From the IMG/VR virus record IMGVR_UViG_3300037042_002125, positions 62,001 through 126,000 of that record: a DNA stretch of 64,000 nucleotides. The stretch is one strand, 5' to 3'. The notes beneath the pieces are model-generated. The model was not told the DNA's origin and did not search any database. It saw only the letters and a list, made by a program, of their open reading frames with translations. Shown here piece after piece: positions 2,483 through 54,219 of this stretch (positions are counted from its first letter, which is position 1; the number at the start of each line of letters is the position of its first letter). Position numbers and translations under genes: made by a program.

Positions 2483-2489
2483 GTTTTTC

Positions 2490-11764: not shown

Positions 11765-11842
11765 TGGTGGGACGTGTAGGACTTGAACCTACGACCAATG
11801 GATTATGAGTCCACTGCTACTGACCAACTGAGCTAACGTCCC
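11765..11842 (-). tRNA. tRNA with CAT anticodon, probably tRNA-Ile2 (lysidine type) rather than Met
   Basis: GGGACGT/ACGTCCC acceptor, GTGGA-CTCATAA-TCCAT anticodon arm, GGTTCAAGTCC T-arm, encoded CCA. Confidence 0.93.
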
Positions 11843-12159: not shown

Positions 12160-12321
12160 TTCAGTTTCCTTTGGGTTGGTTTACTAGCAGGGAATTTTGA
12201 TGTTTGGTTAAGGGTTCCGATTGCATCGCACAGTGTCCGCCAACAGGGCGGCCTGTGCCTACGCAATCAACTCATTCTATTTCGGCGGTTACGCATAATT
12301 CACCCCGAGTTTGTGCGCTTT

Positions 12322-12720
<399 letters not shown>

Positions 12721-12756
12721 CACCACAACCATATGAAGGTCAAGTTAGACTTACCC

Positions 12757-36580: not shown

Positions 36581-36584
36581 TCAT

Positions 36585-38974: not shown

Positions 38975-38976
38975 CA

Positions 38977-39855
38977 ATGTATTGGAATAACACCAACACC
39001 AACACGCTTGACATTTCCCAGGTTGGGGCGTATAAACATTTTCCCCATATGAGTCCAACAAACCTCGACGGGTACAACTGTGATCCACTTGGACCCACAC
39101 CTATCTTGTTCTTAGGTTCCTGTGACCTAGATGGGCCAATAAAAGATACAAACCAAAGCTGGGCACGTTTGCTTCATGCTGACCTTTCCTTAGATGCGAA
39201 GAAGGGGCAACCCTTACCGTACATCGCTATGGGAAAAATGACAGCCGGGTTCATGGCCTTTCCTAGGAGATTAAATACCTTCTGTGAGAAATTTGGACCA
39301 CCTAACAAATTGTTTGCAGTCATACCTAGGCCAGCCGCAGTAGAGATCCCACTTAGCACGGGGGAACTAGTCAGCGTATCAAACAGACATTCTTTTGCAG
39401 ATTTCCTCAAAAAGCACGGACGCATCTCTGATATAGACTACAACTCTCTTGCTAACGCGTCTAAGTTCTTCCAGACGCAACTTCATAATGAGACTTACCA
39501 GCTGTACCAATTTGAACAAAGTGCTTCTTTCTTGGCTTTGATATGCAAGCATTACAAGATTGATTTTCGTTGGACTATGAACCTTAGTGCATCTGCGATT
39601 GCCTACTACCAAATCTATTTTACTTTGTTCATGGCAAACTGTCCTTTCATGCTTGAAAATTTTATTGGTACAGCCATAGCATCTGATTTCAGTTTTGATG
39701 GGAGCATGGGAGATAAGAGTCAGCATCAAATAGCTGACCTATTTATTCAGACAAAAAATTCCCGAGGGTTTGACATGGAGGAGACAATCTCTCTGTTGAA
39801 CATAAACCTTAACCTTGCTAATAGCATCACACCCAAAGTTCACAGGGCTTTATAA
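38977..39855 (+). CDS. hypothetical protein, possible SGNH-like fold
   Basis: ILFLGSC near N-terminus; weak. Confidence 0.55.
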   Translation: MYWNNTNTNTLDISQVGAYKHFPHMSPTNLDGYNCDPLGPTPILFLGSCDLDGPIKDTNQSWARLLHADLSLDAKKGQPLPYIAMGKMTAGFMAFPRRLNTFCEKFGPPNKLFAVIPRPAAVEIPLSTGELVSVSNRHSFADFLKKHGRISDIDYNSLANASKFFQTQLHNETYQLYQFEQSASFLALICKHYKIDFRWTMNLSASAIAYYQIYFTLFMANCPFMLENFIGTAIASDFSFDGSMGDKSQHQIADLFIQTKNSRGFDMEETISLLNINLNLANSITPKVHRAL

Positions 39856-39856
39856 C

Positions 39857-40522
39857 ATGAACCTCACTAAATCATATCTTTTCCCGCCAGTCCAAAGCTT
39901 GTTGTTGAAGAATTTGAACAACCGGCCTTACCTGCACGGGACTGCCATCGTCAAAGGTGTACTTGACGCATTGTGGAGCCAAGTAAGCTATGACATTTGC
40001 GATTTTGAGATCAGCTTGAAGAAGAAGCTAATGTCAAATGCAACCCTGTTCATTAACCGCGCAGGAGAGCGCCACGGGTATGAACCTGAGAAAGAAGACA
40101 TAGTCGTATCTGGCACCTTCTCTTGCGAAGGTATACCTTACGAGTTCCAACTGACTCCTACTTTGATACCTTGTACTGACATACTGGTCGTTGATGAAAA
40201 GGCCTTGGCTGCCCGCATGTATGAAACTGATTCATCTTGGAGTATGGATGTCACTCCCGATGATGATATTCATATCTGCATCAACGAAGTGTCAAAGACA
40301 TCTAACCAATTGATGTTTGCTGTACAACCTGGTATTGTTATGTCACCAGATAAGCAAACATGGTTTGTTGGGTACAAACTTCCCTCTCTTAATTTCCTAT
40401 CTGAACCAGCAACTCAAGTAGGCGTATCAAAAGGGTACAGGATGTTGAGCCCTAACCGAATGATGCGTTGGATTTCTGTTAACCGCCAAATTGTTGGTGA
40501 GCGTATTTGCGTTTATGCCTAG
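39857..40522 (+). CDS. hypothetical protein, possible hotdog-fold enzyme
   Basis: NRPYLHGT motif; weak. Confidence 0.5.
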   Translation: MNLTKSYLFPPVQSLLLKNLNNRPYLHGTAIVKGVLDALWSQVSYDICDFEISLKKKLMSNATLFINRAGERHGYEPEKEDIVVSGTFSCEGIPYEFQLTPTLIPCTDILVVDEKALAARMYETDSSWSMDVTPDDDIHICINEVSKTSNQLMFAVQPGIVMSPDKQTWFVGYKLPSLNFLSEPATQVGVSKGYRMLSPNRMMRWISVNRQIVGERICVYA

Positions 40523-40530
40523 GATCAAAA

Positions 40531-41484
40531 ATGGTTCATGATAACTATTACCGGTGTTACTACAACAGCGACCCCAAACACGTTGTTAGGAAAGATATCC
40601 ATGATAGATGGGAGCAGCACTTTTCAAAGGACATCTTGGATGGTCGTCATGTGCTTACCTTCCAGCATGAGACTCACATAGCCTGTGGTTTCATTTTTGA
40701 CAAATTTAGGAAGTACACTAAGAAAGTAAACCTGTTCTTTAGTGGTGGCATGGACTCTGAATGTCTTTTACGAAGTTTTTGCTATCTCAAGATTCCAGTT
40801 AACCCAATTGTACTCGTACACGTTCATGAACCAAAGTCAAACGAGACACTTAACGCCTTTGCAGTATGTAAAGAGTTAGGCATAGTCCCTACTATATTCA
40901 AAGTTGACCTACCCACGTTGTACAACTCTGGCGTACTACATGATTTGGGACGAAAATATCAGACAGCAAGACTCGGTCAGCTTGAGCTTATCTACGTAAT
41001 GACTAAGCTGGCAATACCTTGCATCCTTGCCGACGATATTCAGATGGTGTACCAAAGCACAGGCGAAGACTTGTTGCACACAGACGCGCATGAAACAAAA
41101 TATCAGCAATGGTTGTATGAGGTGCGTGAGGACGAAGATGGTCTGTACAATCGCTACGAGTCTCTTACTGGCATACCAACGATAGCTGATTCTTTTAGGT
41201 ACACACCCCACCTATGGGCTGCCATGATTCTAGCTAAAGATATTAGATACCTTGTTACACATTCTGCAGGACGAGTATCTAGCTACTCAACGAAAAATAT
41301 AATGATGAGCAAAGAGTTTTCTGTACCAAACAGAGAAAAGACGAACGTGTTTTCTTTTGGTCCACACTTTGCTACAGCTAAAGCTCTCAGAGAAGACTTG
41401 GAGCAAGAACTATTCCCGTTCACAATAGCCAGGTTGCCCTATAAACAGTTACTAACAACATTGGGGATTAAATATGAAATGTAA
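40531..41484 (+). CDS. PP-loop family protein (paralog of 38141)
   Basis: FSGGMDSE motif. Confidence 0.7.
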   Translation: MVHDNYYRCYYNSDPKHVVRKDIHDRWEQHFSKDILDGRHVLTFQHETHIACGFIFDKFRKYTKKVNLFFSGGMDSECLLRSFCYLKIPVNPIVLVHVHEPKSNETLNAFAVCKELGIVPTIFKVDLPTLYNSGVLHDLGRKYQTARLGQLELIYVMTKLAIPCILADDIQMVYQSTGEDLLHTDAHETKYQQWLYEVREDEDGLYNRYESLTGIPTIADSFRYTPHLWAAMILAKDIRYLVTHSAGRVSSYSTKNIMMSKEFSVPNREKTNVFSFGPHFATAKALREDLEQELFPFTIARLPYKQLLTTLGIKYEM

Positions 41485-42034
41485 GGAACTATCTGGCGCT
41501 AATTATTTCGAGTACGACAGACTCGTAGCAGCAGCCAATATAAAAAACAATGGATACCCAAGACCTTCCCTACTGGCGTTAGAGAACTTTTATTTCAACG
41601 ATGAGGAGAAGATGCACAAGGTCTTTGGTGTCTATGATGACAACAACGTCTTGAACGCTTGCATCTTCATCCACTTCTCTGCTAATGCCCGCTACTGGAA
41701 ACTGGCGTATGTGGTCAAGCAACCGTTTGCGCCTTTCAACTGTCTTGCATTTGCATTTGATGAAGCTTTCAAATATGCGGAGAGTATAAAATATTATCAC
41801 GGATACGTTAAGCTCTTTGCTGGGGTTGATGCCCGTTGGGAGAACTGGCTAAGCAGACGATCTGAGATGTTCAGACGATACACTGTTGCAACAGAAGAAG
41901 TTATACCACCAAATAAGAAGTCCTCTTTCGGTATGTACTGGAATGAAATACAACTTGGTATCACGTACGCCCGCCCTGTGCTCGTAAAAATTTATAGCCT
42001 ACCTGATAACCTAAGGATATTTAGTTATGAGTGA
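41474..42034 (+). CDS. hypothetical protein, possible GNAT fold
   Basis: VFGVYDD...ACIFI strand pattern; weak. Confidence 0.55.
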   Translation: MKCKELSGANYFEYDRLVAAANIKNNGYPRPSLLALENFYFNDEEKMHKVFGVYDDNNVLNACIFIHFSANARYWKLAYVVKQPFAPFNCLAFAFDEAFKYAESIKYYHGYVKLFAGVDARWENWLSRRSEMFRRYTVATEEVIPPNKKSSFGMYWNEIQLGITYARPVLVKIYSLPDNLRIFSYE

Positions 42035-42485
42035 CACTCTCTTATCTACCGTAAAGGGGACAGGCGGTGCTCAGGATATGCAAGTAAGATATGCTAGCAG
42101 CATAAACGGGTGCCCTGCAATTGTCCTTTTTCTATCTGCCTACTCCGCGTTAATTGAAGCGAACAACACTCAACCCCTTCTTCTTACTACAAACAAGAGT
42201 GAAGTTATTTATGCGATAGTAAACAAGACTGTAGTTGGTGTGTTAATGTTTGTAGTTTACGCAGATACTTATAAAACAGTATTAGTCCAATTTGTTCACG
42301 TTACTCCTGACCATAGGGGAGCCAGAATTTTCCAACATATGTTCACTGCTCTAGAACAACGTGTTAAGGCTTTTGGGTGCAAAAAGATAACAGGTAACAT
42401 ACACATCAAGAACAAAGATATGCTAACGGCTATGACTAGGATTGGAGCATTTGCAACTTTTTATAAAGTAGAGAAGAACTTATGA
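42027..42485 (+). CDS. GNAT acetyltransferase
   Basis: HVTPDHRGARIF motif A; IHIKN. Confidence 0.8.
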   Translation: MSDTLLSTVKGTGGAQDMQVRYASSINGCPAIVLFLSAYSALIEANNTQPLLLTTNKSEVIYAIVNKTVVGVLMFVVYADTYKTVLVQFVHVTPDHRGARIFQHMFTALEQRVKAFGCKKITGNIHIKNKDMLTAMTRIGAFATFYKVEKNL

Positions 42486-42916
42486 CCAAAAGAAGGTCTA
42501 GTGTTCCGCCCAGTCCTTACTATGCGGCTATCCTAAAGTCTCTTGAGTATGTTGGTCCAATGACTATCAAAGAGATAGCAAGGTACTTAGACGTTCAGTT
42601 CCAAATGGTTTCACACCACTTGAGGGTCATGCGTAGTGAAGGAAAACCCATATACAAGGTTGATTGGGAGCTCAAAGAAATTAAAGGGCGTCGCAGCCCA
42701 ATTTATGGTTTAGGAACTAAAGATATTTGTGATGATGTTCCTGAGCCACCTCCCATATCGCGCCAAGAGCAGAAGCGGCGTTACTACGAGAAGACTAAAC
42801 TTCTAATCAATCTTAAGGCGTACGGTGAACGTTCTGGAATGAATAGGGTAAACAATATATTTGGCCTAACATCGAACACTGTAAATACAGATAGCAACAC
42901 AGAAAGCAAACTATGA
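42482..42916 (+). CDS. winged-helix DNA-binding protein
   Basis: GPMTIKEIARYL...VSHHLRVM. Confidence 0.75.
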   Translation: MTKRRSSVPPSPYYAAILKSLEYVGPMTIKEIARYLDVQFQMVSHHLRVMRSEGKPIYKVDWELKEIKGRRSPIYGLGTKDICDDVPEPPPISRQEQKRRYYEKTKLLINLKAYGERSGMNRVNNIFGLTSNTVNTDSNTESKL

Positions 42917-43307
42917 GCACACCACCTTTTACGCTTAAACCGCTTGTAAGTGAGATCCGATATATTTGTCATTACTGGAAGGAGTTTGGAGACTATGGCA
43001 CTACCTTGTGACAAACCTAATGAGTGTAGGCTGCAAGAAGAAATGCGGACCAAGATAGAACAACTCAACTCTATATTCACAAGCAAACACTGTGAGATGG
43101 AGGTTGGTACCTTTAGGGGGTATGCGTATCATCAGGTCTCCTGACGGTTATAAGTCTGGGTTAATTCCTGACATTACGCCACTATTAACGACCTTGCAAG
43201 AAGATTTGAAGGCTGACAAAGTTAGGTTCAAGCAACAAGAACACAAGCAACTCTCAAAAATAGCCCTGGGGCCCAAACGCGGTCGTTGGGCATAACGAAA
43301 GACAACA

Positions 43308-43526
43308 ATGGCAAAAATAACAAAACTCTCCTTGACGTTGGTACGCAAGCTCAGTGATGGCAACTACGGAACGTACGGCGCAGAGGTCACAGTCGAAGCT
43401 CAACTCGAAGATGGCGACGATGTCAAGGACGTTAAATCGAACCTTCGTAAATCAGCATTGAAGGATTTGGAGCGCGCCATCGAAGTGATAGCCCCAGAAG
43501 AGCCGAAGGCCAAGAAAAAGAAATGA
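43308..43526 (+). CDS. hypothetical protein
   Basis: 72-aa ORF. Confidence 0.65.
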   Translation: MAKITKLSLTLVRKLSDGNYGTYGAEVTVEAQLEDGDDVKDVKSNLRKSALKDLERAIEVIAPEEPKAKKKK

Positions 43527-43798
43527 AGTACACAACCAAGCCTTCTATTGTTGAAGCTACTCAGTGGTTCAAGGATGGAGACCATCCCCTTGTACAAGGT
43601 GCTAATCCAAAGGCTTTATGCGGTTGCATCATGTTAGGTGGTCCAGGTAGTAGCCCTCATGTTCACGATAAAGGTACACAAATCGGAAGCACATTAGTTT
43701 TTGCTGGGGACTGGATAGTCACTGAAGGGGATATTGTATGTGTAATGTCGAACCAAAAATTTAGAGAAACGTACACAGAGCTAAAGGATCAGCCATGA
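43523..43798 (+). CDS. phage hypothetical protein (KP..VEA.QW...GDWIV...F.ETY)
   Basis: recognisable small phage protein pattern. Confidence 0.7.
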   Translation: MKYTTKPSIVEATQWFKDGDHPLVQGANPKALCGCIMLGGPGSSPHVHDKGTQIGSTLVFAGDWIVTEGDIVCVMSNQKFRETYTELKDQP

Positions 43799-44691
43799 AG
43801 ATTGCAATTACTGGGGCGTCAGGTTTCATTGGTCGTAACTGTCTCGATCACTGGCCTGACGCCTTATCATTTGATAAACGTATAACAACGCACCATATAA
43901 CTCACTGTCAAGATATGCTGTGGGGTGAAAATCAGATATACGACTTTGCTGGCGTTGACGCCGTTGTTCACTTGGCTAGTGAGACCTCTGTTCGTAGCGG
44001 ACTAAGTTGCAAAGAGCTCCTACGCATCAACGTAGGGTTGGCAATGAATGTATATGAATCCTGCGTAGAGCACAAAGTACCTTTGATGATAAACGCATCT
44101 TCTAGTTCTGTGTACGGCAATATCCCGCCACCGTTTAGTGAGGAGCAAGTTCCTCACCCTATGTCTAACTATTCTGTGTCTAAGCTTGCTGCCGAACATT
44201 GGTTAAATCTTGCAGCAGACCAGACAGAAGGTTCAGGTCCTTCGATAGTAAACCTTCGTCTGTTTAATGCCCTTGGATCTTACCAAAGGGAGAATATGTT
44301 TCCCTACATCATCTTGGATTGCTTACGCCTAGGTGTACCTGTGCCTCTCTTTAGTGAGATGTACAGGGCATGGACTCCTGTTGACTACATAGTGAAGTGC
44401 ATTGACATGTTGATCACAGAAGGTAATTATGCCAAGGGAGCGAGCTATACGTTCAACTATGGTAATAACACTCCTCTTACGCAGGTGCAATTTATTGCAA
44501 TTATGGCAGATAAACTAAACATAGATATTCCAACAGAAAAGGTTGCTGGGGGATCTAGGCTAGAGATGGCCATAACTTTACCCGATGTGCTGGCAATACG
44601 CAGGTTTATAGATCCGCCTTTACCTGGTGCAAAACAGATCGGAGATGCTATTGCTGATGTGTTTGCCTACTACAATTCAGATCGAGTGTGA
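43795..44691 (+). CDS. NAD-dependent epimerase/dehydratase (extended SDR)
   Basis: TGASGFIG, HLAS, ASSSSVYG, YSVSK. Confidence 0.92.
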   Translation: MKIAITGASGFIGRNCLDHWPDALSFDKRITTHHITHCQDMLWGENQIYDFAGVDAVVHLASETSVRSGLSCKELLRINVGLAMNVYESCVEHKVPLMINASSSSVYGNIPPPFSEEQVPHPMSNYSVSKLAAEHWLNLAADQTEGSGPSIVNLRLFNALGSYQRENMFPYIILDCLRLGVPVPLFSEMYRAWTPVDYIVKCIDMLITEGNYAKGASYTFNYGNNTPLTQVQFIAIMADKLNIDIPTEKVAGGSRLEMAITLPDVLAIRRFIDPPLPGAKQIGDAIADVFAYYNSDRV

Positions 44692-44756
44692 TCAAACCAC
44701 ACTACACCATACTGTAAATTAGAAGTGTTCGAACATGAACAATTTTAAGGAACAGT

Positions 44757-45650
44757 ATGAAACACATGGACCCGAATCCTAAATCGGCCCATAAGAAGAT
44801 TGCCTTTACTGGAACCAATTCCAGCGGCAAGACTACTATGGCTATGGAAGTATGCTCAAGACTTAAACGTGATCACCACGTCCTAGCTGAGCTTGTATCT
44901 TCTCAAGACCGAAAGATCACTTGGAAGGACGATCACTTCCCTGTCGACCCACGTGCCCACTACGGCATGATCACAAATCTCATCCACGCAGAGGTCCAAG
45001 CAGAGCTCAAAGGTGATGCTGATGTTGTCATCACTGATCTCTCTGTTCTGGACCTTTATGCGATCGCCCTTACTGACCACCCCGATAGCCAAATGATAAA
45101 GGCGTTGGGTGTTGCAGTTGATGCTTGGGCCAAAACCTACACTCGAATCTTTTACCTGTCGCCTTTGGCATATCAAGAAGACGGCAAGCGGCCACTTGAC
45201 GAGTTCCGCATGATGACTCACGCTACTCTCATGCAACTGATCGGCACAGGCAATTACCCAAACGTTATCACAATTGACCGGCCAGAAATCTTCAAGACGA
45301 TTCTGGGTTTGTTGCGTATATCTGTAAAGAACGATGTGTTTGCTGAGTACGAGAAGTGGCAACTCCTTGCCGACACTTTCAAGATAACTTTGATAGTTAA
45401 GGAGAGGAATAGCAGCACATCTGATCAAGACGTTTGGTACAGCTACGAAAATAATAATCGTGGCACCCTCTCTGCGTATATTTCAGAAGCAAGCAACATT
45501 AAAGCTTTTGCGAAGCTTCTGTTTGGCGATCAATTTAAGATCGACCTCATGTTCGCCCCACCTGTGCCTTGGCATAAGGTTCCATTTGTTGCTGTAAAGT
45601 ACATGCCTACTGGACCTGACACTGCATTGACACATGAGGACGCACAATGA
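44757..45650 (+). CDS. P-loop nucleotide kinase (AAA_28/NadR-like) with extra C-terminal domain
   Basis: GTNSSGKTT, TDLSVLD, EDGKR. Confidence 0.8.
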   Translation: MKHMDPNPKSAHKKIAFTGTNSSGKTTMAMEVCSRLKRDHHVLAELVSSQDRKITWKDDHFPVDPRAHYGMITNLIHAEVQAELKGDADVVITDLSVLDLYAIALTDHPDSQMIKALGVAVDAWAKTYTRIFYLSPLAYQEDGKRPLDEFRMMTHATLMQLIGTGNYPNVITIDRPEIFKTILGLLRISVKNDVFAEYEKWQLLADTFKITLIVKERNSSTSDQDVWYSYENNNRGTLSAYISEASNIKAFAKLLFGDQFKIDLMFAPPVPWHKVPFVAVKYMPTGPDTALTHEDAQ

Positions 45651-46234
45651 TAACACCACGACAAGAAGCTACTGTCAAGGCGCAAAAGCTTAGCCTGTTC
45701 GAACTATCGTGTGCCGCGTTCAAGATCGACATGCTTGAACGCGTAGCCTTAGAACGCCTTGCAACACTACCTAACGAGATATTGCCTATTGGTGGGCTGT
45801 ACGTTGGCACAAGTGGCGGAAAAGATTCTGTAGCAGTTCATCATTTGATGAGTAAGACTGATCTGACTTGGTCAGTTCTCCATACAAACAAACCAGAGGA
45901 TGTTCATCCTTTAACAAAAGACTTCCTGTACCGCAGGCAGTATCCTATTCTGTATGTACCTAAGGGTGCGGCCATGCCTGCACATTTGCGAACTCAGTTC
46001 GATGGGTCAAGGGCATCTGAGTACAATAGGGCAGATGGCCGTTCCACTGATTTCATTGTAGGCGGAGTATCTGTGTCAAGGGATAAGATGCCTCTGTATG
46101 TTACCAACGGGTTGTTTGGCCTAAACTTTGTGTTTCCTATGTACGACTGGTCAGATGAAGAAGTGTGGGCGTATATATTCGGGAACGACATTGAGTACAG
46201 CGACGAATATCTCATTCCAAAGGATGCAGCATGA
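45647..46234 (+). CDS. PAPS reductase-family (PP-loop) protein
   Basis: SGGKDS, GSRASE, PMYDWSDEEVWAYI. Confidence 0.85.
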   Translation: MITPRQEATVKAQKLSLFELSCAAFKIDMLERVALERLATLPNEILPIGGLYVGTSGGKDSVAVHHLMSKTDLTWSVLHTNKPEDVHPLTKDFLYRRQYPILYVPKGAAMPAHLRTQFDGSRASEYNRADGRSTDFIVGGVSVSRDKMPLYVTNGLFGLNFVFPMYDWSDEEVWAYIFGNDIEYSDEYLIPKDAA

Positions 46235-46902
46235 AGACACTGATCCTTGCACCGCACGTTGATGACGAACTTATTGGCTGTTATCAAGTTCTTGAAGATT
46301 ACAGGCATGGTCCAAAAGAAAATGATTTGGATGTCATATGGCTCTACGAGACAACTGAGGAACGACTAACAGAAGGTCATCGCCTTGCAGAGTACTTTGG
46401 GTTTACTGGTGCTGCTGTGTTTAGTGCCCAGGTTCCTGAGCTTATATACCGAGGTAAGTACGACAAGATCTACGTACCAGCACGTCAGGATTGGCACATA
46501 GATCACAAGATGACCAACCAGCTGTTCAGAGAATTCGCTACTAACTTCTACTCTGTAGATATGGTTATGGGCGTTCCCTTGTCTGAGAAGGCTAGCAATA
46601 ACAAGAGAGTGCTGTTAGACACATTCTACCCAAGTCAAGCAAAGCTATGGGAGTACGATGCAAAGTATTACCTGTTTACTGCCGTCTACGAGACAGATAT
46701 CCACAGCTACGTCCGGAGACGCTACGGGTTCTTCTCAATAACCGCACCAGCCAACTACGTTGAAGAAATCAATTCGATCGTCTTACAAAACATGGACGAC
46801 TTCAACAAGTGCCAAGTCAAAGCGTTCAACAAATTGGTTAGCGTATGCCTATCTGGTGAGCTACGGTTTGATCACATCAACGGTTGCATTTTTAAGATCT
46901 AA
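46231..46902 (+). CDS. PIG-L/LmbE-family deacetylase
   Basis: APHVDDE and HIDH motifs. Confidence 0.85.
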   Translation: MKTLILAPHVDDELIGCYQVLEDYRHGPKENDLDVIWLYETTEERLTEGHRLAEYFGFTGAAVFSAQVPELIYRGKYDKIYVPARQDWHIDHKMTNQLFREFATNFYSVDMVMGVPLSEKASNNKRVLLDTFYPSQAKLWEYDAKYYLFTAVYETDIHSYVRRRYGFFSITAPANYVEEINSIVLQNMDDFNKCQVKAFNKLVSVCLSGELRFDHINGCIFKI

Positions 46903-46916
46903 AAGAGGAACACATC

Positions 46917-47432
46917 ATGAAACTTGGATTTGAAGTAGAAGGTCGTTTGTCAGGCCTATACACTCTGTTTATGGACGCCAAAGAGGCTATGGAATTTTTC
47001 AACTACAAGTCTCTAAAGGATAGGTCGACTCCGAAAAGCGCAGTAGCAAGTGTTGAACGGGTTCAACAAATCTACGTAAGTGACCACGCCAACGACATAC
47101 AACCTTATGCCGACTGCCTAAAAAAGTGGTACGAATTAGGTCTACCTGTAACACTAGAGAGAACTGAGATATATAACAGAGACAGTTACTCCAAAAATGT
47201 AACCATCATGTTAACTATAACAGACACTGGTTCGCTTTTCAACGATAGTTTCTGGAATTTGTACGATACAGACCAAGTAAAGTTTAGCAGAACTACGTTT
47301 GACGGTAGTAACACAGTGCGGTGTATTACTGTTGGTAACATGATGCTAACGCAACCACAAGCCTTTGCTGACGATATAACGTTAAAAGTATCAACTGATA
47401 AGAAGTTCCTACTGCCAGGGTTACAAAAATGA
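46917..47432 (+). CDS. hypothetical protein
   Basis: 171-aa ORF with GAGG RBS. Confidence 0.7.
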   Translation: MKLGFEVEGRLSGLYTLFMDAKEAMEFFNYKSLKDRSTPKSAVASVERVQQIYVSDHANDIQPYADCLKKWYELGLPVTLERTEIYNRDSYSKNVTIMLTITDTGSLFNDSFWNLYDTDQVKFSRTTFDGSNTVRCITVGNMMLTQPQAFADDITLKVSTDKKFLLPGLQK

Positions 47433-48544
47433 ATACCAAAAAACAATTAGTGCTAGTCCCTCTTGAGCCGTTGTTTGAGCGGTACACAGAGTCCTGGTAC
47501 AGGAATATACCGCCTCTGTTTACCAAGCACGGCTTCGATGTGACGGTCATAGACGGTGTGACGTTGGAAGATGAAGTGAAGGTCGGAACCTTCTTGGACA
47601 TCAACAGCACAACCCATTACAAGTTTACTCAGCTACAAAAGATCAGCAAGATGTTTCATCAGCGGCAGATCAAAGATGGGTGCGTATTCTTTTTCTCCGA
47701 CACAGAGTTTTGGGGACTTGAGAGCGTACGGCTGTTGGCGCAAATGAATAACGTCAAGGTGTTCATAACTTCGTTCCTGCACGCCGCGTCCTACACAAAA
47801 GAAGACGCGTTCAGCGTTGCAGCCTATTACCAAAAATATACAGAGGTTGGTTGGATAGCCTGCAGTGATCTAGTATTTGTCGGTAGCCAGTACCACAAGC
47901 AGCAGGTCATAAGAGAACGTCTGCGTCCGTACGGGGCAAAGAACTTGGAAAGCAACTTGTATGTCAGTAAGAACCCTCTGTTCCTATCCGACTACCCAAG
48001 GGCCAATAACACAAATCTGTTGGCAGGCAAACAGAAAAAAGTTTTACTTACCAACAGGTTCGATACTGAAAAGCGGCCCAACGAAACCCTTGAGATGTTT
48101 GCCATACTTAAGCTAAGGTATCCAGATTGGGAGTTCGTTGTGACCACTGGCAGGTCAACCTTCCGAGGAACTGAGAGCGTGGTGTATGCCCGTAAGCTCG
48201 AGGCTGAGGGTGTGATCACTATAAAGGCAGGCTTGACAAAAGATCAGTACCACAAAGAGCTTGAAGAAGCAGCGATCATGGTAACTCATAGTATTGAGGA
48301 AAACTACGGTTATTGTCTTGCAGAAGCTTTGATCCACAAATGCCATGTGGTTGCCCGTAAAGGCTTATCTCACGATGAGTTCTTGCCCATGCAATTCTTG
48401 TTTGATAATGAGAAGGTTAGGGACTTTGACGTAACGTCCGATCTCATGGCTACGTTCAATACCTCTGACTGGCCTACTGTAAATGAAGTAGACACTAACG
48501 GAGCAGAGAACATTGCTCGAAGTCTAGAGAGGTTGGTTTTATGA
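47429..48544 (+). CDS. GT-B (GT4-like) glycosyltransferase
   Basis: RFDTEKR and EENYGYCLAEA (E-x7-E). Confidence 0.85.
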   Translation: MNTKKQLVLVPLEPLFERYTESWYRNIPPLFTKHGFDVTVIDGVTLEDEVKVGTFLDINSTTHYKFTQLQKISKMFHQRQIKDGCVFFFSDTEFWGLESVRLLAQMNNVKVFITSFLHAASYTKEDAFSVAAYYQKYTEVGWIACSDLVFVGSQYHKQQVIRERLRPYGAKNLESNLYVSKNPLFLSDYPRANNTNLLAGKQKKVLLTNRFDTEKRPNETLEMFAILKLRYPDWEFVVTTGRSTFRGTESVVYARKLEAEGVITIKAGLTKDQYHKELEEAAIMVTHSIEENYGYCLAEALIHKCHVVARKGLSHDEFLPMQFLFDNEKVRDFDVTSDLMATFNTSDWPTVNEVDTNGAENIARSLERLVL

Positions 48545-49848
48545 GCGTTCACCTAGTCCCTGCCGGGTGCGAGAGCTATTCTCAAAATAGCGCCCAAATT
48601 TTGGTTACAAGGGAACACAACAAGAAAGAATCAACAGAGTTTGGCGCAAAGTACAAACAGTGGTACACCCACGATAAGACTGTTAGCTTTGTATCTCGGT
48701 CGCAAGTCAACGGCGTGAACATTAAGCACACTGCTGACATCGCTGTTCCAATATCCAACGCCCTGTTTGTCCACGCCTGTGGGCTGACCAAGGTTTTGGC
48801 AAATCCAATCCATGGCGATTATGTCAAGAGCACCTTTGAAGACAAGGGCATAGAATCCATCATTGATAGTGGTGGGTTCCAGATGCTAACTGGCGCAGTA
48901 GACTTTGTCCACCCTGACGATGTGGTACGCAGGTACAACAAGTTGGCAAACATTGGGATGCCAATTGACTTGCCAGTCCGATCAAAGTTTGAAAAAGAGT
49001 ATTTCGATCCTGTTTCGAGAATGATCAAAGCCAACGATGATTATCTAATCCAGCGGCTTGACCCAAATATACACTTAGCTTTGATTAGCCACGGGACGTC
49101 TTTAGAAAGGAGAAAACGTCGTTTGGACGTTCTCGATCGCAAAGCTGAGGTAGTGGCAATAGCAGGTCTGAACATCAAACCGGAACCTGGCGTTGACCAT
49201 TACTTGAACATAATTGAGAATTTAATGTATGTGATACACAGGTACAGAAAGACTACTAGGTACTTTCACGTCCTGGGTGTAACAGCCAAATTCTGGATGT
49301 TCATGTATGCGCTGATTGAGGCAGAAGGTTACGTCAGAGAAATCGGCGCTGACTCAGTTAGCCACCGAATGGGTTCTCTGATTGGCATGGTTGACCGTTC
49401 AGACTTCACTGTCGTTGACATTCCAAAGAATCAAGTCTTCAAGCAGGCTATTCCTTGTGGGTGTCCTGTTTGCGTGGCGATTGATGACATCCGCATCCTT
49501 AACGCTGCGGCAATTCTCGAAGCTCACAACCTATGGGTAAAGGCTAAACAGACTGAGTTGATTGTAGACCTGGCAAGGCACTTCATAAAGAACGAGGTTA
49601 CGCTGGCAGAGATATCGAAGGTAATGAACCTGCGCATTGACCTGACGAAGTTTCAATACATGGTCAACTACACTCGCGAGATCATCGCCAGCGACAAGTT
49701 CAAGAGTATCAAACCGGCTCGCAGTACCAACAGCTTGTTCTCAGACATCATCTCAGAAGAGAACATAGATGAAGCGAACGTAGGCAAGGACAAGTACAAC
49801 GAGATTCTTATCAAGTACGAGAAATTTCACAAAAGAAAGTTTAGGTGA
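48541..49848 (+). CDS. tRNA-guanine transglycosylase-like protein (DpdA-like DNA base exchange)
   Basis: DSGGFQ, PIDLP, HVLG, ADS, zinc site CGCPVC...HN. Confidence 0.82.
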   Translation: MSVHLVPAGCESYSQNSAQILVTREHNKKESTEFGAKYKQWYTHDKTVSFVSRSQVNGVNIKHTADIAVPISNALFVHACGLTKVLANPIHGDYVKSTFEDKGIESIIDSGGFQMLTGAVDFVHPDDVVRRYNKLANIGMPIDLPVRSKFEKEYFDPVSRMIKANDDYLIQRLDPNIHLALISHGTSLERRKRRLDVLDRKAEVVAIAGLNIKPEPGVDHYLNIIENLMYVIHRYRKTTRYFHVLGVTAKFWMFMYALIEAEGYVREIGADSVSHRMGSLIGMVDRSDFTVVDIPKNQVFKQAIPCGCPVCVAIDDIRILNAAAILEAHNLWVKAKQTELIVDLARHFIKNEVTLAEISKVMNLRIDLTKFQYMVNYTREIIASDKFKSIKPARSTNSLFSDIISEENIDEANVGKDKYNEILIKYEKFHKRKFR

Positions 49849-49852
49849 CAGT

Positions 49853-50221
49853 ATGGCTACCGCACCTGTTAAAGCAAAACCTGCTGTAAAGACTGTTGGT
49901 GGGTTGATTTTTTGGCCAGTCAAGAAACCAGAACGATTCTACGCATCAGTTCGCTCTTGGGTAGAAGCTGGGTTGCCTGACGAAGCTTGGGTTTATGACT
50001 CAGCTGATACGTTGTCCAGCTGTCGTATTAAGATCGTTGATGCAACCTACTACAGAGGAATTTTCAACCGCATCCCACGGCTGTTGAAGCCAAAGGAAAA
50101 TAAGCTAATCTTCCCTAGCATCTTGTTGGTACCTATTACGCCAGCCCTCGCCAAGGACAAAGCAAAAGGCATCAAAGGTGCTAACACCAAAGAGCATCAC
50201 AGACTAAATTACGGAGCGTAA
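49853..50221 (+). CDS. hypothetical protein
   Basis: 122-aa ORF. Confidence 0.6.
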   Translation: MATAPVKAKPAVKTVGGLIFWPVKKPERFYASVRSWVEAGLPDEAWVYDSADTLSSCRIKIVDATYYRGIFNRIPRLLKPKENKLIFPSILLVPITPALAKDKAKGIKGANTKEHHRLNYGA

Positions 50222-50224
50222 ACC

Positions 50225-50653
50225 ATGACAACCATTAACACAGACAAAGAAACTCTAGTGATCTCTACACCTAGGCTTAGTAGGCTCAGCAGTCAAAAGA
50301 CAACCATATGGGTAAAGTTTACTCGACCTGGTATTCACTGCTACCTTAAGGCTCCAGATGAAGTGAAGTATCTTAGAGATCCTCACCGTCACAGTTTCCA
50401 TTTCAAAGTTGGCATCCAGGTTCATCACGATGACCGTGAAATCGAATTCCATATGTTCTTGAATTGGGTTACCGGCCTGTACGACAAGTCTATGCTCATG
50501 TTGGATTACAAATCTTGCGAAATGATTGCCGCAGAATTAGTTGGAGCAATTGCTTCTAAATACGATTGCAGTAATCGTTCAATCGAAGTAGAAGTTTCTG
50601 AGGATGGAGAATGTGGAGCCTGTGTCTACGACAATCCAGTTGGTATCTACTAA
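50225..50653 (+). CDS. QueD/PTPS-like T-fold protein
   Basis: GIHCY, HRHSFHF, SCEMIA, VEVSEDGE. Confidence 0.78.
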   Translation: MTTINTDKETLVISTPRLSRLSSQKTTIWVKFTRPGIHCYLKAPDEVKYLRDPHRHSFHFKVGIQVHHDDREIEFHMFLNWVTGLYDKSMLMLDYKSCEMIAAELVGAIASKYDCSNRSIEVEVSEDGECGACVYDNPVGIY

Positions 50654-50691: not shown

Positions 50692-50730
50692 GGCCGTTGC
50701 CTGGTAATTCTGGGCAACGGCCTTTCCTTT
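50692..50730 (+). terminator. intrinsic terminator
   Basis: GGCCGTTGCC/GGCAACGGCC stem then TTTCCTTT. Confidence 0.7.
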
Positions 50731-50829
50731 GCCTGCGTCATTTCAAAGATTTGCTGCACATTGTATTTTAATATATCACTGGACCAGCCTAACAGTGATT
50801 TAAGTTCAAAAACCCTACGTGGAGAATAC

Positions 50830-52443
50830 ATGCACAAACCAAATCTTAAGAGAGCTTCTCGGTTCGCCGAGATCGCTCGTAAGACTGGTGGTGTGTTTGT
50901 TTTCGCTACCCGGGACGCTACGTTGCCAAATGCGAAGGACGTAAGTGCAGAGATTGCAAAGCATAGTTTCGTACAATGCTCCTGCAAGAAATGCACCGCA
51001 GAATTTGCGTTTCCCAAAGTCGAAGGCGCACAGCCATTCTGTGTTGTCTGCGGCGATGGAAATGTAGAAGTCAAGGGAGAAGTGAAAGCGAGCATTGCCC
51101 CCGACGAAGAACTCTCGTATCTGACTTGCGCTGGTTGCGGAACGATTAACGCGTTTCATGCTGCCCTTGCAGGTGTAGGCAAACACATCCACTGCTCTGC
51201 ATGTGGTACTGATATGCTTGAAAAAGCTGCCGATGGAAGCGATGAGGGTGACGGTGAAGACATCGATTTCGATGAGGACACTGAAGAAGCTGCTGACGAT
51301 GCGCCAGAAGTTGACGATATGGAACTCCTCGATCTTGAGGACGACATTGAAGACACTGATGATGCTGTCGCAACTACGACCAATGAAGATCAAGTTGGCG
51401 TAAAACCCAATACGACTACATTGCCTGATGACGCTGGCGCAGACAGAGGCCCTGGTGCTCCTGACTCAGCCCTTGTTGATGGCAAGCCTGCTAACCCTGG
51501 TATCGAGCCAACCACTCAGAACCCAGGCGCCGTGGAGCCCAAAGTCACAAAGGCGGGTGCAGTCAAAGCTGATGCAGATGAAATGCCTGAAAATGACTAC
51601 GGAGATGAAACGATTGACATGGACCTAGTTGACGTCGAAGACGAAGACGAAACCCCAATTGAATCCGTATCGTTCTTCTACGGTGACAAGAAGGTGTTGC
51701 TGTCTGCCAAGGACCAAATCATTGCCACACTGGCCGAAGCGGATGCAGGTGCTTACAAGGATATGCTGCAAACTGAGCAGTTCCGTATGAGCGTCGCGCA
51801 CACCATCGAAACAGAAGGCTTGAAGAAGGCTCTGGCAACGTACAAGTTCAAACCCAGCAAGGTCACTGTCAAAGTTTCCAAGGTTGTGCAGGCGAAAGTC
51901 GATGCAGCTACTGAGAAACAACGGAAGACGGCCACTGCAGGTGCTGACACGTATGCCGAACAGTTCCAACACAGTCTGGATATTGCAGCCGCAGGTTACG
52001 CAGGTAATTTCTGGCGCAACAAACATGATCCGTTGAAGACTGCCTTGATTGCAGAGTTGGCGAGCCTAAACATTCGCAAACCTGAAAAGATCATTGACAA
52101 GATTTTCGCACAATACAGTGTCGCCCAATTCCGGGAAGTCATTGATGTTGCGCGCGAACTTGCCAAGAAGCCTGTCGTGGCTCTAAACGCATTGGCTGAG
52201 ACGATTGATTTGGTGAAGTACACCCCGACCGCGAACTTGAAAAAGCCCGTGACCGCTGGTGATGACGCCGATGAAGACGAATCAGTTGATGACGATGACG
52301 TTGATGACGATGAGACAGAAGATGAAGGCGAAGAGTTTGCTACCGCTACTCCCGTCGAAGTCGTAACGTCTTCGTTGAAAGACAGTTCGTTCAAGACTCC
52401 GGAATTGCGTCGCATTCTGGGTAATTCCTCTTCCTTCTTTTAA
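50830..52443 (+). CDS. prohead core/scaffold-like protein with N-terminal zinc ribbons
   Basis: four CxxC motifs, long acidic tracts, two genes upstream of the putative MCP. Confidence 0.55.
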   Translation: MHKPNLKRASRFAEIARKTGGVFVFATRDATLPNAKDVSAEIAKHSFVQCSCKKCTAEFAFPKVEGAQPFCVVCGDGNVEVKGEVKASIAPDEELSYLTCAGCGTINAFHAALAGVGKHIHCSACGTDMLEKAADGSDEGDGEDIDFDEDTEEAADDAPEVDDMELLDLEDDIEDTDDAVATTTNEDQVGVKPNTTTLPDDAGADRGPGAPDSALVDGKPANPGIEPTTQNPGAVEPKVTKAGAVKADADEMPENDYGDETIDMDLVDVEDEDETPIESVSFFYGDKKVLLSAKDQIIATLAEADAGAYKDMLQTEQFRMSVAHTIETEGLKKALATYKFKPSKVTVKVSKVVQAKVDAATEKQRKTATAGADTYAEQFQHSLDIAAAGYAGNFWRNKHDPLKTALIAELASLNIRKPEKIIDKIFAQYSVAQFREVIDVARELAKKPVVALNALAETIDLVKYTPTANLKKPVTAGDDADEDESVDDDDVDDDETEDEGEEFATATPVEVVTSSLKDSSFKTPELRRILGNSSSFF

Positions 52444-53166: not shown

Positions 53167-54219
53167 ATGATGCGAATCAAAACTCCCGTGCTCGCTACCG
53201 AGTATCGCTTCCAGGGCTCCAACGAGCGTGCTGTCGGTGCAAATGGTGACTTGAATGCCGGCTCCAAACGCGAACTGCTTCAACGTCAATTGATGCTGGT
53301 CCAGGCTACGGCCAACGGCGAAGTGACCACTGCTGGTAAATTGGAACGCGCTCGTAAGAGCCGCGAACTGATCGAAGCAATGTTCAACAACGACGCTGTC
53401 CACAAGGAACTCGGCGAAACGATGGGCAAGGACTTGTACCTGACTGCCAATCGCCGCGGTTTTGCTCGTAAGTTTATGAGCCGTCAAGACCTGCTGCCTG
53501 GTCAATTCCCGGTTGTCAAGCTGCGCCGGAAAGACGTTACGGTTGTGTACGCAACTTCGCCTACCAAGACGGAATCGCAAATCACCCGTGACAAGATCTT
53601 CACGCCGCCGGAAGTCATCCTGGAAGCTCGTCCGTTCATCGAACTGCGCGAAATCAACACGTCGACCTCCGACGTGTTGGACGAGAAGTTTGGTGAAGCT
53701 CTGGAAGCTATCATGGTCGGTGAAGACCGTCTGTGGAAGCGCCAAGCTGACAGCACCATTGGCCTGGACAACGACCTGAGCATCATCTCTGGTACGCTGA
53801 CCCCGCTGACTTTGATGGAAGTGCGTCAGAACGTTGCACGTTGGAACCTGCCGGTCCCGTCGCTGCTGATGGCATCTGATCTGTACACTGACATCGTCGG
53901 TGACACCACGTTCATCCAAGCGATTGAACCGGTTGCACGTCATGAGCTGATTATGACTGGCGAACTGGCTATCCTGTACGGCATGGCAATCACTAGCGAT
54001 GCATATCGCCATCCGGAACACCGCGTTCTGAATCAAGGCGAGTTCTATGCAATCAGCGACCCGATCACCCATGGTCAGTACACTGATCGTGGCGGCGTTG
54101 ATACGGAAGCAATCTCCGGCGCAACTGAGAAGATTCCTGGCAAGGGCTGGTGGGTCTATGAGTCTTACTCCTCAGTGATTGGTAATACTCGTTCTGTTGC
54201 TAAGGGCATCCGCCAGTAA
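53167..54219 (+). CDS. major capsid protein
   Basis: 350 aa, strong high-expression codon bias, head-module position, followed by a hairpin. Confidence 0.75.
   Translation: MMRIKTPVLATEYRFQGSNERAVGANGDLNAGSKRELLQRQLMLVQATANGEVTTAGKLERARKSRELIEAMFNNDAVHKELGETMGKDLYLTANRRGFARKFMSRQDLLPGQFPVVKLRRKDVTVVYATSPTKTESQITRDKIFTPPEVILEARPFIELREINTSTSDVLDEKFGEALEAIMVGEDRLWKRQADSTIGLDNDLSIISGTLTPLTLMEVRQNVARWNLPVPSLLMASDLYTDIVGDTTFIQAIEPVARHELIMTGELAILYGMAITSDAYRHPEHRVLNQGEFYAISDPITHGQYTDRGGVDTEAISGATEKIPGKGWWVYESYSSVIGNTRSVAKGIRQ

Follow-up and report, generated by a model that had tools for sequence, protein, structure and literature searches.

DNA modification with 7-deazaguanines is known from phages, and one of the closest known systems to the locus studied here is that of Cellulophaga phage phiST, which carries plain dDG by mass spectrometry (Cui et al. 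2023, PMC10516641). Like the genome analyzed here, phiST encodes FolE, QueD and QueE without QueC, a DpdL with the LxxxHRHxF motif, a dUTPase_2/MazG-type gene and a TGT-superfamily DNA transglycosylase. DpdL is a QueD paralog that accompanies QueC-less deazaguanine pathways and has been proposed to act as a 7-carboxy-7-deazaguanine (CDG) decarboxylase, although this activity has never been shown experimentally, even for the phiST and ACP17 proteins. Two further types of cassette, those of PA5oct-type phages (Wroclawvirus) and of ACP17, combine a DpdA, DpdL and a glycosyltransferase (GT) with FolE and QueE, and PA5oct DNA contains a modified G, detected by restriction digests, whose chemistry is unidentified (PMC12191111). 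Outside phages, glycosylated and amidated deazapurines are known as free secondary metabolites. Specifically, in the huimycin/dapiramicin and peptidyl-deazapurine pathways a free 7-deazaguanine base is tailored, either by a GT that uses UDP-GlcNAc (HuiG, acting on N2) or through an amide bond formed from adenylated CDG. These clusters are bacterial, start from preQ0 or CDG and lack any nucleic-acid insertion enzyme.

Here, we examined a 64,000-nt window (positions 62,001 to 126,000 of IMG/VR record IMGVR_UViG_3300037042_002125) of a ~222-kb freshwater jumbo phage, in which a conserved, operon-like gene cassette links a predicted DpdA and DpdL to a dedicated GT and putative amino-sugar tailoring enzymes. 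The cassette predicts a sugar-bearing 7-deazaguanine in phage DNA that has not been described chemically, and no paper in the literature searched describes a glycosylated deazaguanine in DNA.

Gene content of the locus

The original prediction had recognized epimerase, kinase, PAPS-reductase-like, PIG-L deacetylase, GT4 glycosyltransferase, TGT/DpdA-like and QueD-like genes, and our analysis confirmed that all of these are present (Table 1). Two further open reading frames of the module, unk171 and unk122, had not been listed. The ATGA overlap between the GT and TGT-like genes, which had been noted previously, is real and is one of five such overlaps in the run, which is closed by a terminator-like hairpin (a pattern match only) with a 13-bp stem containing 9 G-C pairs and a T-rich tail, 39 nt after the DpdL stop codon. 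The statement that no folE, queE or queC lies in the window was also correct. However, the genome does carry FolE, a QueE-like radical SAM enzyme, dUTPase_2 and a true QueD at genome positions 184.3-187.6 kb (QueD at 187106-187648), about 60 kb outside the window, and it has no QueC candidate.

Table 1. Features of the cassette, with positions in the 64,000-nt window.
Position	Strand	Feature	Length	Assignment
43795-44691	+	Epimerase	298 aa	Extended-SDR NDP-sugar epimerase/dehydratase, likely supplying the sugar donor; lineage-specific accessory
44757-45650	+	Kinase-like	297 aa	AAA_28 (NadR/KTI12-type) P-loop kinase-like protein; variable accessory
45647-46234	+	PP-loop	195 aa	PP-loop ATPase of the PAPS-reductase family, predicted to carry out an ATP-dependent adenylation or ligation step
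46231-46902	+	PIG-L	223 aa	Putative PIG-L/LmbE-type metal-dependent de-N-acetylase
46917-47432	+	unk171		Small acidic protein, possibly a QueE-like half-barrel that has lost the Fe-S cluster
47429-48544	+	GT	371 aa	GT4-type (GT-B) glycosyltransferase
48541-49848	+	DpdA	435 aa	Predicted DpdA-family guanine transglycosylase (pI 8.8)
49853-50221	+	unk122		Small, very basic protein (pI 10.0), candidate DpdA/DNA-binding partner
50225-50653	+	DpdL	142 aa	T-fold QueD paralog, proposed CDG decarboxylase giving 7-deazaguanine
50692-50722	+	Hairpin		Terminator-like

The TGT-like protein itself had no Pfam hit, but its fold assignment was unambiguous: the AF2 model had a pLDDT of 90, the listed top 50 Foldseek hits in the PDB were all TGT (probability 1.00, best E 8.4e-11), and the family profile matched archaeosine TGT at 1.2e-5. 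Further, D109-S-G-G-F-Q114, D271 and the zinc-site residues C306, C308, C311 and H329 (CxCxxC...H) were invariant in 30 sequences, with the DSGGxQ and zinc-site residues aligning to the corresponding motifs of archaeosine TGT 1iq8. The clade is distinct from DpdA3 (phiST, Campylobacter phages) and from the nt-1/KVP40/ACP17 type. Specifically, hhalign of the clade profile against the phiST DpdA3 (CGPG_00065) gave a probability of 1% (E 0.049), tblastn gave no hit to the X1 or ACP17 DpdA genes at E<=0.01, and only remote profile similarity to these (77-89% probability) was seen; the nearest named relatives are BCSR5 (54%) and Motura (23%). One alternative is that this enzyme modifies phage or host tRNA rather than DNA, in line with its TGT fold and catalytic signature and with the tRNA-Met and tmRNA encoded in the window. 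Although the evidence for action on DNA is indirect, we consider this alternative unlikely, given that phage TGT homologs that sit with FolE, QueD and QueE are the DNA-modifying DpdA enzymes in every case tested (PMC10516641), that PA5oct, with its related cassette, has modified G in its DNA, and that a dUTPase_2/MazG-type gene accompanies the que genes here, as it does in phiST.

The gene described as QueD-like in the original prediction is the already named DpdL. It lacks a Pfam PTPS hit, and the CxxxHGH motif of QueD is replaced by L50-R-D-P-H54-R-H56-S-F58, which matches LxxxHRHxF as defined in PMC10516641, such that the catalytic Cys is lost (Leu replaces it) and the Zn-binding His residues are kept. 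L50, H54, H56, F58 and H38 were at least 90% conserved in 19 homologs, and E74 and E99 were also conserved. The protein is 52% identical to its ACP17 homolog and is related to the founding member, phiST CGPG_00067 (BLASTP 27% identity, E 4e-8; hit by our DpdL HMM at 2e-24).

Among the putative tailoring enzymes, the GT matched Glycos_transf_1 (PF00534, 2.8e-7; 30.7 bits, above the cut-off of 26.4), as did 13 of 14 family members (best 8e-12). Its EX7E motif is conserved, with E299 invariant and E291 at least 90% conserved, and the nearest PDB sequences are GT4 enzymes. The PP-loop protein matched PAPS_reduct (PF01507, 1.2e-8; 35.7 bits, above the cut-off of 22.5), not QueC, and its S56-G-G-K-D-S61 motif was at least 90% conserved in 12 homologs. 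The PIG-L assignment is less secure, as the Pfam score (PF02585, 5.1e-5; 24.2) is below the gathering cut-off of 28.2 and only the N-terminal 40 residues match, although P8-H9-x-D11-D12-E13 and H89-x-x-H92 were at least 90% conserved in 12 homologs and one homolog carries a precomputed PIG-L hit. The epimerase (Pfam Epimerase, 2.1e-25) has readable GxxGxxG and YxxxK motifs and is present only in the closest relatives (loci L006 and L007), although a homolog sits directly beside the GT in 5 IMG/VR loci of the separate PA5oct-type lineage. The kinase-like protein (AAA_28, 2.7e-7) has Atlas feature and structure neighbours that are all AAA_28, and it is present in 6 of 10 clade loci, in one of which it lies between unk122 and FolE.

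For unk171 (AF2 pLDDT 81), QueE took three of the top four places among 48,161 chains in VIA-align (Z 6.8, 6.4 and 5.5), and Foldseek gave QueE a probability of 0.82-0.90. However, this similarity is within the noise range (Z<8), hhalign to phage QueE gave only E 0.014, and unk171 homologs have no conserved Cys, while the phage QueE family keeps C49, C53 and C56 of the 4Fe-4S motif; only a resemblance of fold is seen, and the fold assignment remains uncertain. The protein unk122 (family pI 9.3-10.2) is immediately downstream of DpdA in all 11 loci of this DpdA clade, including one that lacks the GT, and is absent from X1, which has another DpdA type, but a complex prediction gave no verdict.

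Association of the glycosyltransferase with deazaguanine genes

The original prediction had left open whether the locus encodes one pathway, for a glycosylated or otherwise tailored deazaguanine, or two adjacent pathways, and our results support the former. The block PP-loop-PIG-L-unk171-GT-DpdA-unk122 is collinear in 10 loci with 34-80% DpdA identity, where it sits between or next to DpdL, QueD, QueE, FolE and dUTPase_2, and the PP-loop gene always occurs together with PIG-L and unk171. Further, among 50,697 GenBank phage records, 18 have the GT; all 18 are among the 24 records with DpdL, and the two genes lie within 0-2 genes of each other. At least 432 IMG/VR contigs carry a GT relative, and of 80 loci chosen by the GT alone, 72 have DpdL, 64 FolE, 61 a DpdA of one of three types, and 78 at least one deazaguanine gene. 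These counts include related phages, with only 6 GT clusters at 40% identity and 25 at 60%. The distribution of the genes is nested, from DpdL, to the GT, to PIG-L, PP-loop and unk171, and finally to the kinase and epimerase. Phage genes are densely packed whatever their function, and the epimerase, GT and deacetylase families are generic, such that the sugar genes could in principle serve host-surface, virion-protein or other glycosylation and merely neighbor DpdA and DpdL. However, this reading is contradicted by the co-occurrence data and by the collinearity and interleaving of the tailoring genes with que genes at 34-62% identity, and we consider it very unlikely.

As a negative control, phiST had no GT hit at E<=10 in its whole genome, and it also lacks PIG-L, PP-loop, unk171, the kinase and the epimerase. 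PA5oct carries the DpdA-GT-DpdL-QueE core, and Cui et al. obtained no dDG from ACP17 dpdA plus dpdL without further genes, with the GT lying between those two genes in ACP17. The PA5oct and ACP17 cassettes share the GT family and DpdL as adjacent genes next to que genes, but use other DpdA types (the 540-aa PA5oct type and the nt-1/KVP40 type) and lack the PP-loop-PIG-L-unk171 sub-module, the kinase and unk122. No ThyA-family or hmC/hmU enzyme in the genome offers another acceptor, nor was a TET/JBP enzyme found, albeit in a search without an informative control.

Predicted pathway of the modification

Taken as one pathway, the homologies indicate that FolE, QueD and QueE can make CDG and, as there is no QueC, that the pathway does not go on to preQ0. 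The remaining steps are inferred. First, DpdL would convert CDG to 7-deazaguanine, as proposed by Cui et al. Second, the GT would attach an N-acetylhexosamine to the deazaguanine, its donor here probably being adjusted by the epimerase; the HexNAc is inferred only from the obligate pairing with the PIG-L-type gene in the extended cassette. Third, the PIG-L protein would deacetylate the sugar to expose its amine. Fourth, the PP-loop ATPase, perhaps with unk171, would perform an ATP-dependent ligation, and the AAA_28 kinase would phosphorylate. Finally, DpdA, possibly with unk122, would exchange genomic guanine for the base. This scheme follows the logic attributed to mycothiol, bacillithiol and GPI-anchor synthesis, in which a GT4 enzyme (MshA/BshA/PIG-A) is followed by a PIG-L-family deacetylase (MshB/BshB/PIG-L) and an ATP-dependent ligase (MshC/BshC), implying transfer of GlcNAc, deacetylation to GlcN and acylation of the freed amine. 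It would differ in its acceptor, a deazapurine rather than inositol phosphate, malate or PI, and in its ATP enzyme, a PAPS-reductase-type PP-loop protein rather than a CysRS homolog, and only a weak sequence match of the GT to MshA was seen (7qsg, E 0.44).

We place the probability of this reading at roughly 0.6, as the chemistry is unproven and there are no chemical data for this phage or for any GT-bearing relative. In particular, 7-deazaguanine has no obvious hydroxyl acceptor, in contrast to glycosylated queuosine (manQ/galQ) in animal tRNA and glucosyl-hmC in T-even phage DNA, in which the sugar goes onto the cyclopentenediol of Q or the hydroxymethyl of hmC. Glycosylation would have to occur at C7 (a C-glycoside), N2 or the carboxyl of CDG, each of which is unprecedented in DNA. 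In addition, the CDG genes are 60 kb from the cassette in this genome.

The order of the steps is similarly uncertain. The GT, PIG-L, PP-loop, unk171 and kinase families are acidic (median pI 5.1-6.3), while DpdA and unk122 are basic (9.3-9.8), and Cui et al. predicted that DpdL acts on the free base. On these grounds, neither of which is strong, we slightly favor tailoring of the free base before insertion. It remains possible, if less likely, that DpdA inserts plain DG or CDG and that the GT, PIG-L, PP-loop enzyme and kinase then act on the DNA polymer, as T4 glucosyltransferases do on hmC and as appears usual for phage DNA glycosylation and thymidine hypermodification. The pairing of the same DpdL and GT with three very different DpdA types would be easier to explain if DpdA only had to accept a small base.

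Alternatively, the DNA may carry only plain dDG or dCDG, with the GT and tailoring enzymes making something ancillary from the same precursor, such as a soluble huimycin-like metabolite or a transient sugar handle removed at or before insertion. The existence of such free metabolites, the acidic tailoring enzymes (as expected for small-molecule enzymes) and the lack of an obvious acceptor group in DG are in line with this idea. We nevertheless find it doubtful, given that the metabolite clusters described so far lack insertion enzymes, while here the GT is translationally coupled to DpdA and travels with DpdA genes of three types, and that a lytic phage has no evident use for a secreted nucleoside antibiotic. 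PA5oct DNA is demonstrably G-modified, although that would also fit plain dDG. If the cassette does produce a hypermodified 7-deazaguanine in the DNA of this jumbo phage, its purpose would be protection from restriction, as for other phage deazaguanines.

Organization of the gene run and its deazaguanine genes

The region lies on a 222,078-bp IMG/VR viral contig that is 93% complete by CheckV, and close relatives recur in sediment and lake-water metagenomes of many studies. A megablast search of the region against GenBank phages found no match. Nine ORFs are packed together with five ATGA start/stop overlaps and gaps of 3-65 nt, and a strong terminator-like hairpin follows the run. Every gene named in the original prediction is present: an SDR epimerase (Pfam 2.1e-25), an AAA_28 P-loop protein (2.7e-7), a PAPS-reductase-type PP-loop protein (1.2e-8, with SGGKDS), a PIG-L-like protein (5e-5, below the cut-off), a glycosyltransferase (GT) with a Glycos_transf_1 domain (2.8e-7), a 435-aa TGT-like protein and a 142-aa QueD-like protein. 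We identified two further ORFs that belong to the run, termed unk171 and unk122. NCBIfam gave nothing specific for the module proteins, apart from generic SDR and PAPS-reductase hits.

Coordinates of the cassette and of neighboring or comparative features (window positions unless a locus or genome is named)
Location	Strand	Feature
43795-50653	+	Nine-ORF run
46917-47432	+	unk171
49853-50221	+	unk122
50692-50722		Terminator-like hairpin
50761-52443	+	560-aa acidic protein
35561-43798	+	Tightly packed run immediately upstream of the cassette
42027-42485	+	GNAT acetyltransferase, within the upstream run
42482-42916	+	ArsR-type HTH, within the upstream run
12321-12751 and 11765-11842	-	Permuted (two-piece) tmRNA, with a tRNA-Met(CAT) beside it
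989-5196 (-); 28019-28918 (-); 53167-54219, 56858-58792, 61755-63863 (+)		Topoisomerase IV/gyrase A- and B-like subunits, a DnaJ-domain protein, the major head protein, the tail sheath and an endolysin-like protein
Genome positions 184.3-187.6 kb		FolE, QueE-like radical SAM enzyme, dUTPase_2 and true QueD
G000:C1:59811-60440 (the phage genome; L023), just outside the window	-	ThyX (Thy1) domain
L016:6010-7305; L012:9352-10695 and L012:7435-7896		Second GT of the same family (L016 and Synechococcus phage BUCT-ZZ01); xanthine-guanine phosphoribosyltransferase (BUCT-ZZ01)
L018:13199-13657; L013:12402-13226; L011:11400-11933		Other genes flanking DpdL in relatives: HAD_PNKP-type phosphatase (L018), macro-domain protein (RHph_I1_18), 'glycosylase' (Phosso)
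L002 (Achromobacter phage Motura) 6857-12626		QueC - asparagine-synthetase-like - DpdA - x - QueE - x - FolE cassette

Single-sequence phmmer searches of the proteins of the two deazaguanine genes against PDB sequences found nothing, and profiles and fold searches were needed. The 435-aa protein, DpdA, has no Pfam hit itself, but it heads a family of 84 protein clusters, most of which lie on contigs of about 200 kb and several of which reach Pfam TGT. In a 30-sequence alignment, DSGGFQ (109-114), D271, C306, C308, C311 and H329 are invariant, and an AlphaFold model (pLDDT 90) matches only tRNA-guanine transglycosylases at the top of the PDB (probability 1.00, E down to 8.4e-11). Further, the family profile aligns its DSGGFQ and CxCxxC...HN motifs to archaeosine TGT. 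The 142-aa protein carries L-RDP-H-R-H-S-F, which is exactly the LxxxHRHxF signature by which Cui et al. 2023 (PMC10516641) separate DpdL from QueD (CxxxHGH); those authors propose DpdL to be a CDG decarboxylase giving 7-deazaguanine, and find it in phages with DpdA, FolE, QueD and QueE but no QueC. It is 52% identical to the ACP17 homolog and matches the founding member, phiST CGPG_00067 (BLASTP 4e-8; family HMM 2e-24). The genome fits this pattern, as it carries FolE, a QueE-like radical SAM enzyme, dUTPase_2 and a true QueD, while no QueC was found. Hence, the original prediction was right that folE, queE and queC are not recognizable in the window, but the precursor pathway to CDG is present in the genome.

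Immediately upstream of the cassette, a run of two radical SAM proteins (339 and 524 aa; Pfam 2.4e-8 and 1.9e-13), five ORFs of 186-325 aa with no family hit, a GNAT acetyltransferase, an ArsR-type HTH and several small ORFs is shared only with the nearest relative (locus L006), not with Burkholderia jumbo phage BCSR5 or the metagenomic clade members, and could represent lineage-specific extra tailoring or a separate system. Just after the terminator lies an extremely acidic protein (pI 4.4) with a weak phage 'ATPase' match (phrog_20988, 1e-16), which is conserved next to the cassette only in close relatives (L006, L007 and L015). The cassette sits directly upstream of the structural genes. 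Elsewhere in the window, the tmRNA scores 85.3 bits with Rfam tmRNA_permuted against a gathering score of 47 (E 3.4e-16), while the betaproteobacterial tmRNA model scores 70.6 bits, below its gathering score of 84; ARAGORN gives the tag ANDENFRMVA*. This hints at a betaproteobacterial host, in line with relatives that infect Burkholderia, Achromobacter and Acidovorax.

Linkage of the glycosyltransferase to deazaguanine genes

We next considered whether the sugar-tailoring and deazaguanine genes represent one pathway or two adjacent ones, both of which the original prediction had allowed. A locus search with the single DpdA sequence returned only two close relatives. In BCSR5, the nearest annotated relative (54% DpdA identity), the order is QueD - DpdL - P-loop - PP-loop - PIG-L - unk171 - GT - DpdA - unk122 - QueE ... 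FolE, such that the tailoring genes sit between deazaguanine genes. Of eight metagenomic members of the DpdA clade that we sampled, seven, at 34-62% identity, keep PP-loop-PIG-L-unk171-GT-DpdA-unk122 strictly collinear, while DpdL, QueD, QueE, FolE, dUTPase_2 and the AAA_28 kinase shuffle around that block; in one of these loci (L018), the kinase lies between unk122 and FolE. The most distant member (L019, 30%) has DpdL, DpdA and unk122 but none of the tailoring genes.

Iterated HMM searches over all ORFs of 19 loci gave a nested distribution. DpdL occurs alone in RHph_I1_18 and Ahp1, and with the GT in ACP17, PA5oct, Phosso and BUCT-ZZ01. PIG-L, the PP-loop protein and unk171, which always occur together, accompany DpdL and the GT in X1, BCSR5 and this clade; the kinase is additionally present in 6 of 10 loci of this clade, and the epimerase only in the closest relatives. 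A second GT of the same family in some cassettes suggests a disaccharide, and BUCT-ZZ01 has an annotated xanthine-guanine phosphoribosyltransferase between QueE and QueD, which hints at a nucleotide-level route in that phage. A HAD_PNKP-type phosphatase after FolE (L018), a macro-domain (Appr-1-p processing) protein after DpdL in the GT-less Rhizobium phage RHph_I1_18, and a 'glycosylase' before DpdL in Phosso may be further variable parts of deazaguanine pathways. The nearest annotated DpdA outgroup, in Achromobacter phage Motura (23% identity), sits in a different cassette with QueC and an asparagine-synthetase-like gene but no DpdL or GT, so that within one DpdA lineage the chemistry appears to have switched between a QueC/amidotransferase branch and the DpdL/GT branch.

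Among 50,697 annotated phage records, 24 have DpdL and 18 have the GT; all 18 GT records are DpdL-positive, and the GT lies 0-2 genes from DpdL. In a test starting from the GT alone, of the 80 IMG/VR loci fetched, 72 have DpdL, 64 FolE, 43 QueE and 61 a DpdA, and 78 have at least one deazaguanine gene, with the exceptions being mostly short contigs. The commonest architecture is DpdA - DpdL - GT - FolE - QueE. These loci are not all independent, given that the 81 GT proteins form 6 clusters at 40% identity, 25 at 60% and 67 at 80%, but they do span three DpdA types: that of this window, the nt-1/KVP40/ACP17 type, and the 540-aa PA5oct type, which we verified to be TGT-like (hhalign 94.7%, DSGGFQ aligned). 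Further, X1 shares GT (50%), DpdL (55%), PP-loop (43%) and PIG-L (34%) with this window, yet has a DpdA of another type. In five PA5oct-type loci, an SDR epimerase homolog sits beside the GT, which independently ties the epimerase named in the original prediction to the pathway. From these results, we conclude that the two-pathways reading is effectively excluded, and we place the probability that the cassette is one deazaguanine pathway at about 0.85-0.9.

No alternative acceptor for the GT was apparent. The genome has no ThyA-family enzyme that could make hydroxymethyl-pyrimidines, only a ThyX, whose domain lies in an unusually long 482-aa open frame; a relative (L021) has a similar 475-aa Thy1 protein next to its cassette. 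We therefore rejected a thymidine-hypermodification reading, in which the P-loop kinase would be a 5-hmdU kinase, as the kinase also co-varies with the deazaguanine genes. A search for TET/JBP enzymes found no match, but its control was also without signal, making this result uninformative.

The DNA of phiST contains plain dDG by mass spectrometry (PMC10516641), and its whole 79-kb genome has DpdL, QueD, QueE and FolE but no hit to the GT profiles even at E<=10, nor any of the other accessory genes. Cui et al. co-expressed dpdA and dpdL of ACP17 in Escherichia coli, saw no dDG, and remarked that other enzymes may be needed; in ACP17, the GT gene lies between those two genes, and its omission may explain why no product was obtained. 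PA5oct has the DpdA-GT-DpdL-QueE core and is targeted by nucleases specific for modified G, although its chemistry was not determined (PMC12191111).

Accessory proteins and an inferred tailoring route

The GT is a GT4-type GT-B enzyme. Specifically, 13 of 14 members hit Glycos_transf_1 (best 8e-12), EX7E (E291/E299), R210 and K215 are conserved, and the nearest PDB sequences are GT4 enzymes. Its N-terminal (acceptor) half is unusually conserved across members of about 25% identity (E13, R18, Y19, Q68, D91, D126, E139 and others), which argues for one common acceptor. The PIG-L-like protein keeps PHxDDE and HxxH, and the PP-loop protein keeps SGGKDS and the C-terminal PAPS-reductase motif. A reading of the latter as a divergent QueC is not supported, as it has no QueC match and is absent from many GT plus DpdL cassettes that also lack QueC. 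The kinase is an AAA_28 protein by sequence, features and structure.

The predicted fold of unk171 is confident (pLDDT 81), but Pfam found nothing for its family, an Atlas look-up scored at noise level (0.80, with LAGLIDADG-like leads that were disregarded), and Foldseek against PDB and AFDB gave no significant match. Nevertheless, two aligners rank QueE first: VIA-align gives Z 6.8, 6.4 and 5.5 for three QueE structures among 48,161 chains, and Foldseek gives probability 0.82-0.90. Its invariant ExEG...G...LF lines up with the QGEG...G...LF of QueE, but it has none of the cluster cysteines, and hhalign against QueE gave E 0.014, the best of ten families but not significant; a cluster-less QueE-like ligand binder is thus only a lead. 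An Atlas look-up for unk122 gave no usable hit. This protein follows the DpdA clade of this window, being present in GT-less L019 and absent from X1, and like DpdA it is very basic (family pI 9.3-10.2 against 8.8-9.4), while all the tailoring enzymes are acidic, with median pI 5.1-6.3. A complex prediction for DpdA plus unk122 gave no verdict (score 0.00, partner pLDDT about 29) and is evidence neither for nor against binding.

Homology supports a capacity for CDG synthesis, a DpdA transglycosylase, DpdL, a GT4 enzyme, a PP-loop ATPase and an SDR epimerase. From these, we infer a route in which DpdL turns CDG into 7-deazaguanine, the GT adds an N-acetylhexosamine, PIG-L frees the amine, the PP-loop enzyme, perhaps with unk171, ligates a further group, the kinase phosphorylates, and DpdA, perhaps with unk122, swaps the base into DNA. 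The donor is inferred only from the obligate pairing of the GT with a PIG-L-type deacetylase in the extended cassette, a GT4 -> PIG-L -> ATP-dependent ligase logic that is generally that of mycothiol, bacillithiol and GPI synthesis. There are precedents for tailoring a free deazapurine: HuiG uses UDP-GlcNAc on the 2-amino group in huimycin biosynthesis (PMC7439116), and amide synthetases use adenylated CDG (bioRxiv 10.64898/2026.04.15.718813). The latter study notes that such clusters lack insertion enzymes, which is exactly what differs here. The pI split mildly favors tailoring before insertion, whereas the use of three DpdA types mildly favors insertion of a small base followed by tailoring on DNA.

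A candidate sugar-bearing purine in phage DNA

The interpretation of a tailored, probably glycosylated, deazaguanine is supported at the genomic level but not yet chemically, and we place the probability that the DNA base carries a sugar at about 0.5-0.6. DpdA and DpdL belong to known kinds, although this DpdA clade is neither DpdA3 nor the nt-1/ACP17 type, while the GT-linked branch and its amino-sugar extension appear to be undescribed. Eight 7-deazaguanine derivatives are known in phage DNA, none of which carries a sugar, and no natural DNA purine is known to be glycosylated. We found no paper describing a sugar-bearing deazaguanine in DNA in the literature searched, which did not include Hutinet et al. 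2019, and the text of Cui et al. never mentions a glycosyltransferase.

One reading, which we regard as about as likely as not, is that a large, undescribed family of phage GT4 glycosyltransferases (at least 432 viral contigs, including the PA5oct group of jumbo phages) glycosylates 7-deazaguanine, which would give the first sugar-bearing purine analogue in natural DNA. Because 7-deazaguanine lacks a hydroxyl, the linkage would be a C7 C-glycoside or an N- or acyl-glycoside. C7 is the position of all known DNA deazaguanine substituents and faces the major groove, but a bond there would require a C-glycoside, or an acyl-glycoside if CDG is the acceptor. In the extended cassette seen here, the sugar would be deacetylated to a hexosamine and then decorated further by a PP-loop ligase, a cluster-less QueE-like protein and a kinase.

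The cassette is widespread, occurring in freshwater, soil and marine jumbo and T4-like phages, and in cultured phages of Pseudomonas, Burkholderia, Xanthomonas, Acidovorax, Sinorhizobium and Synechococcus. It offers a concrete candidate for the chemically unidentified modified G of PA5oct. A new bulky G modification would matter for restriction and CRISPR evasion, for type IV and END-nuclease or glycosylase defenses, for sequencing of such phages, and as a source of enzymes for DNA labeling.
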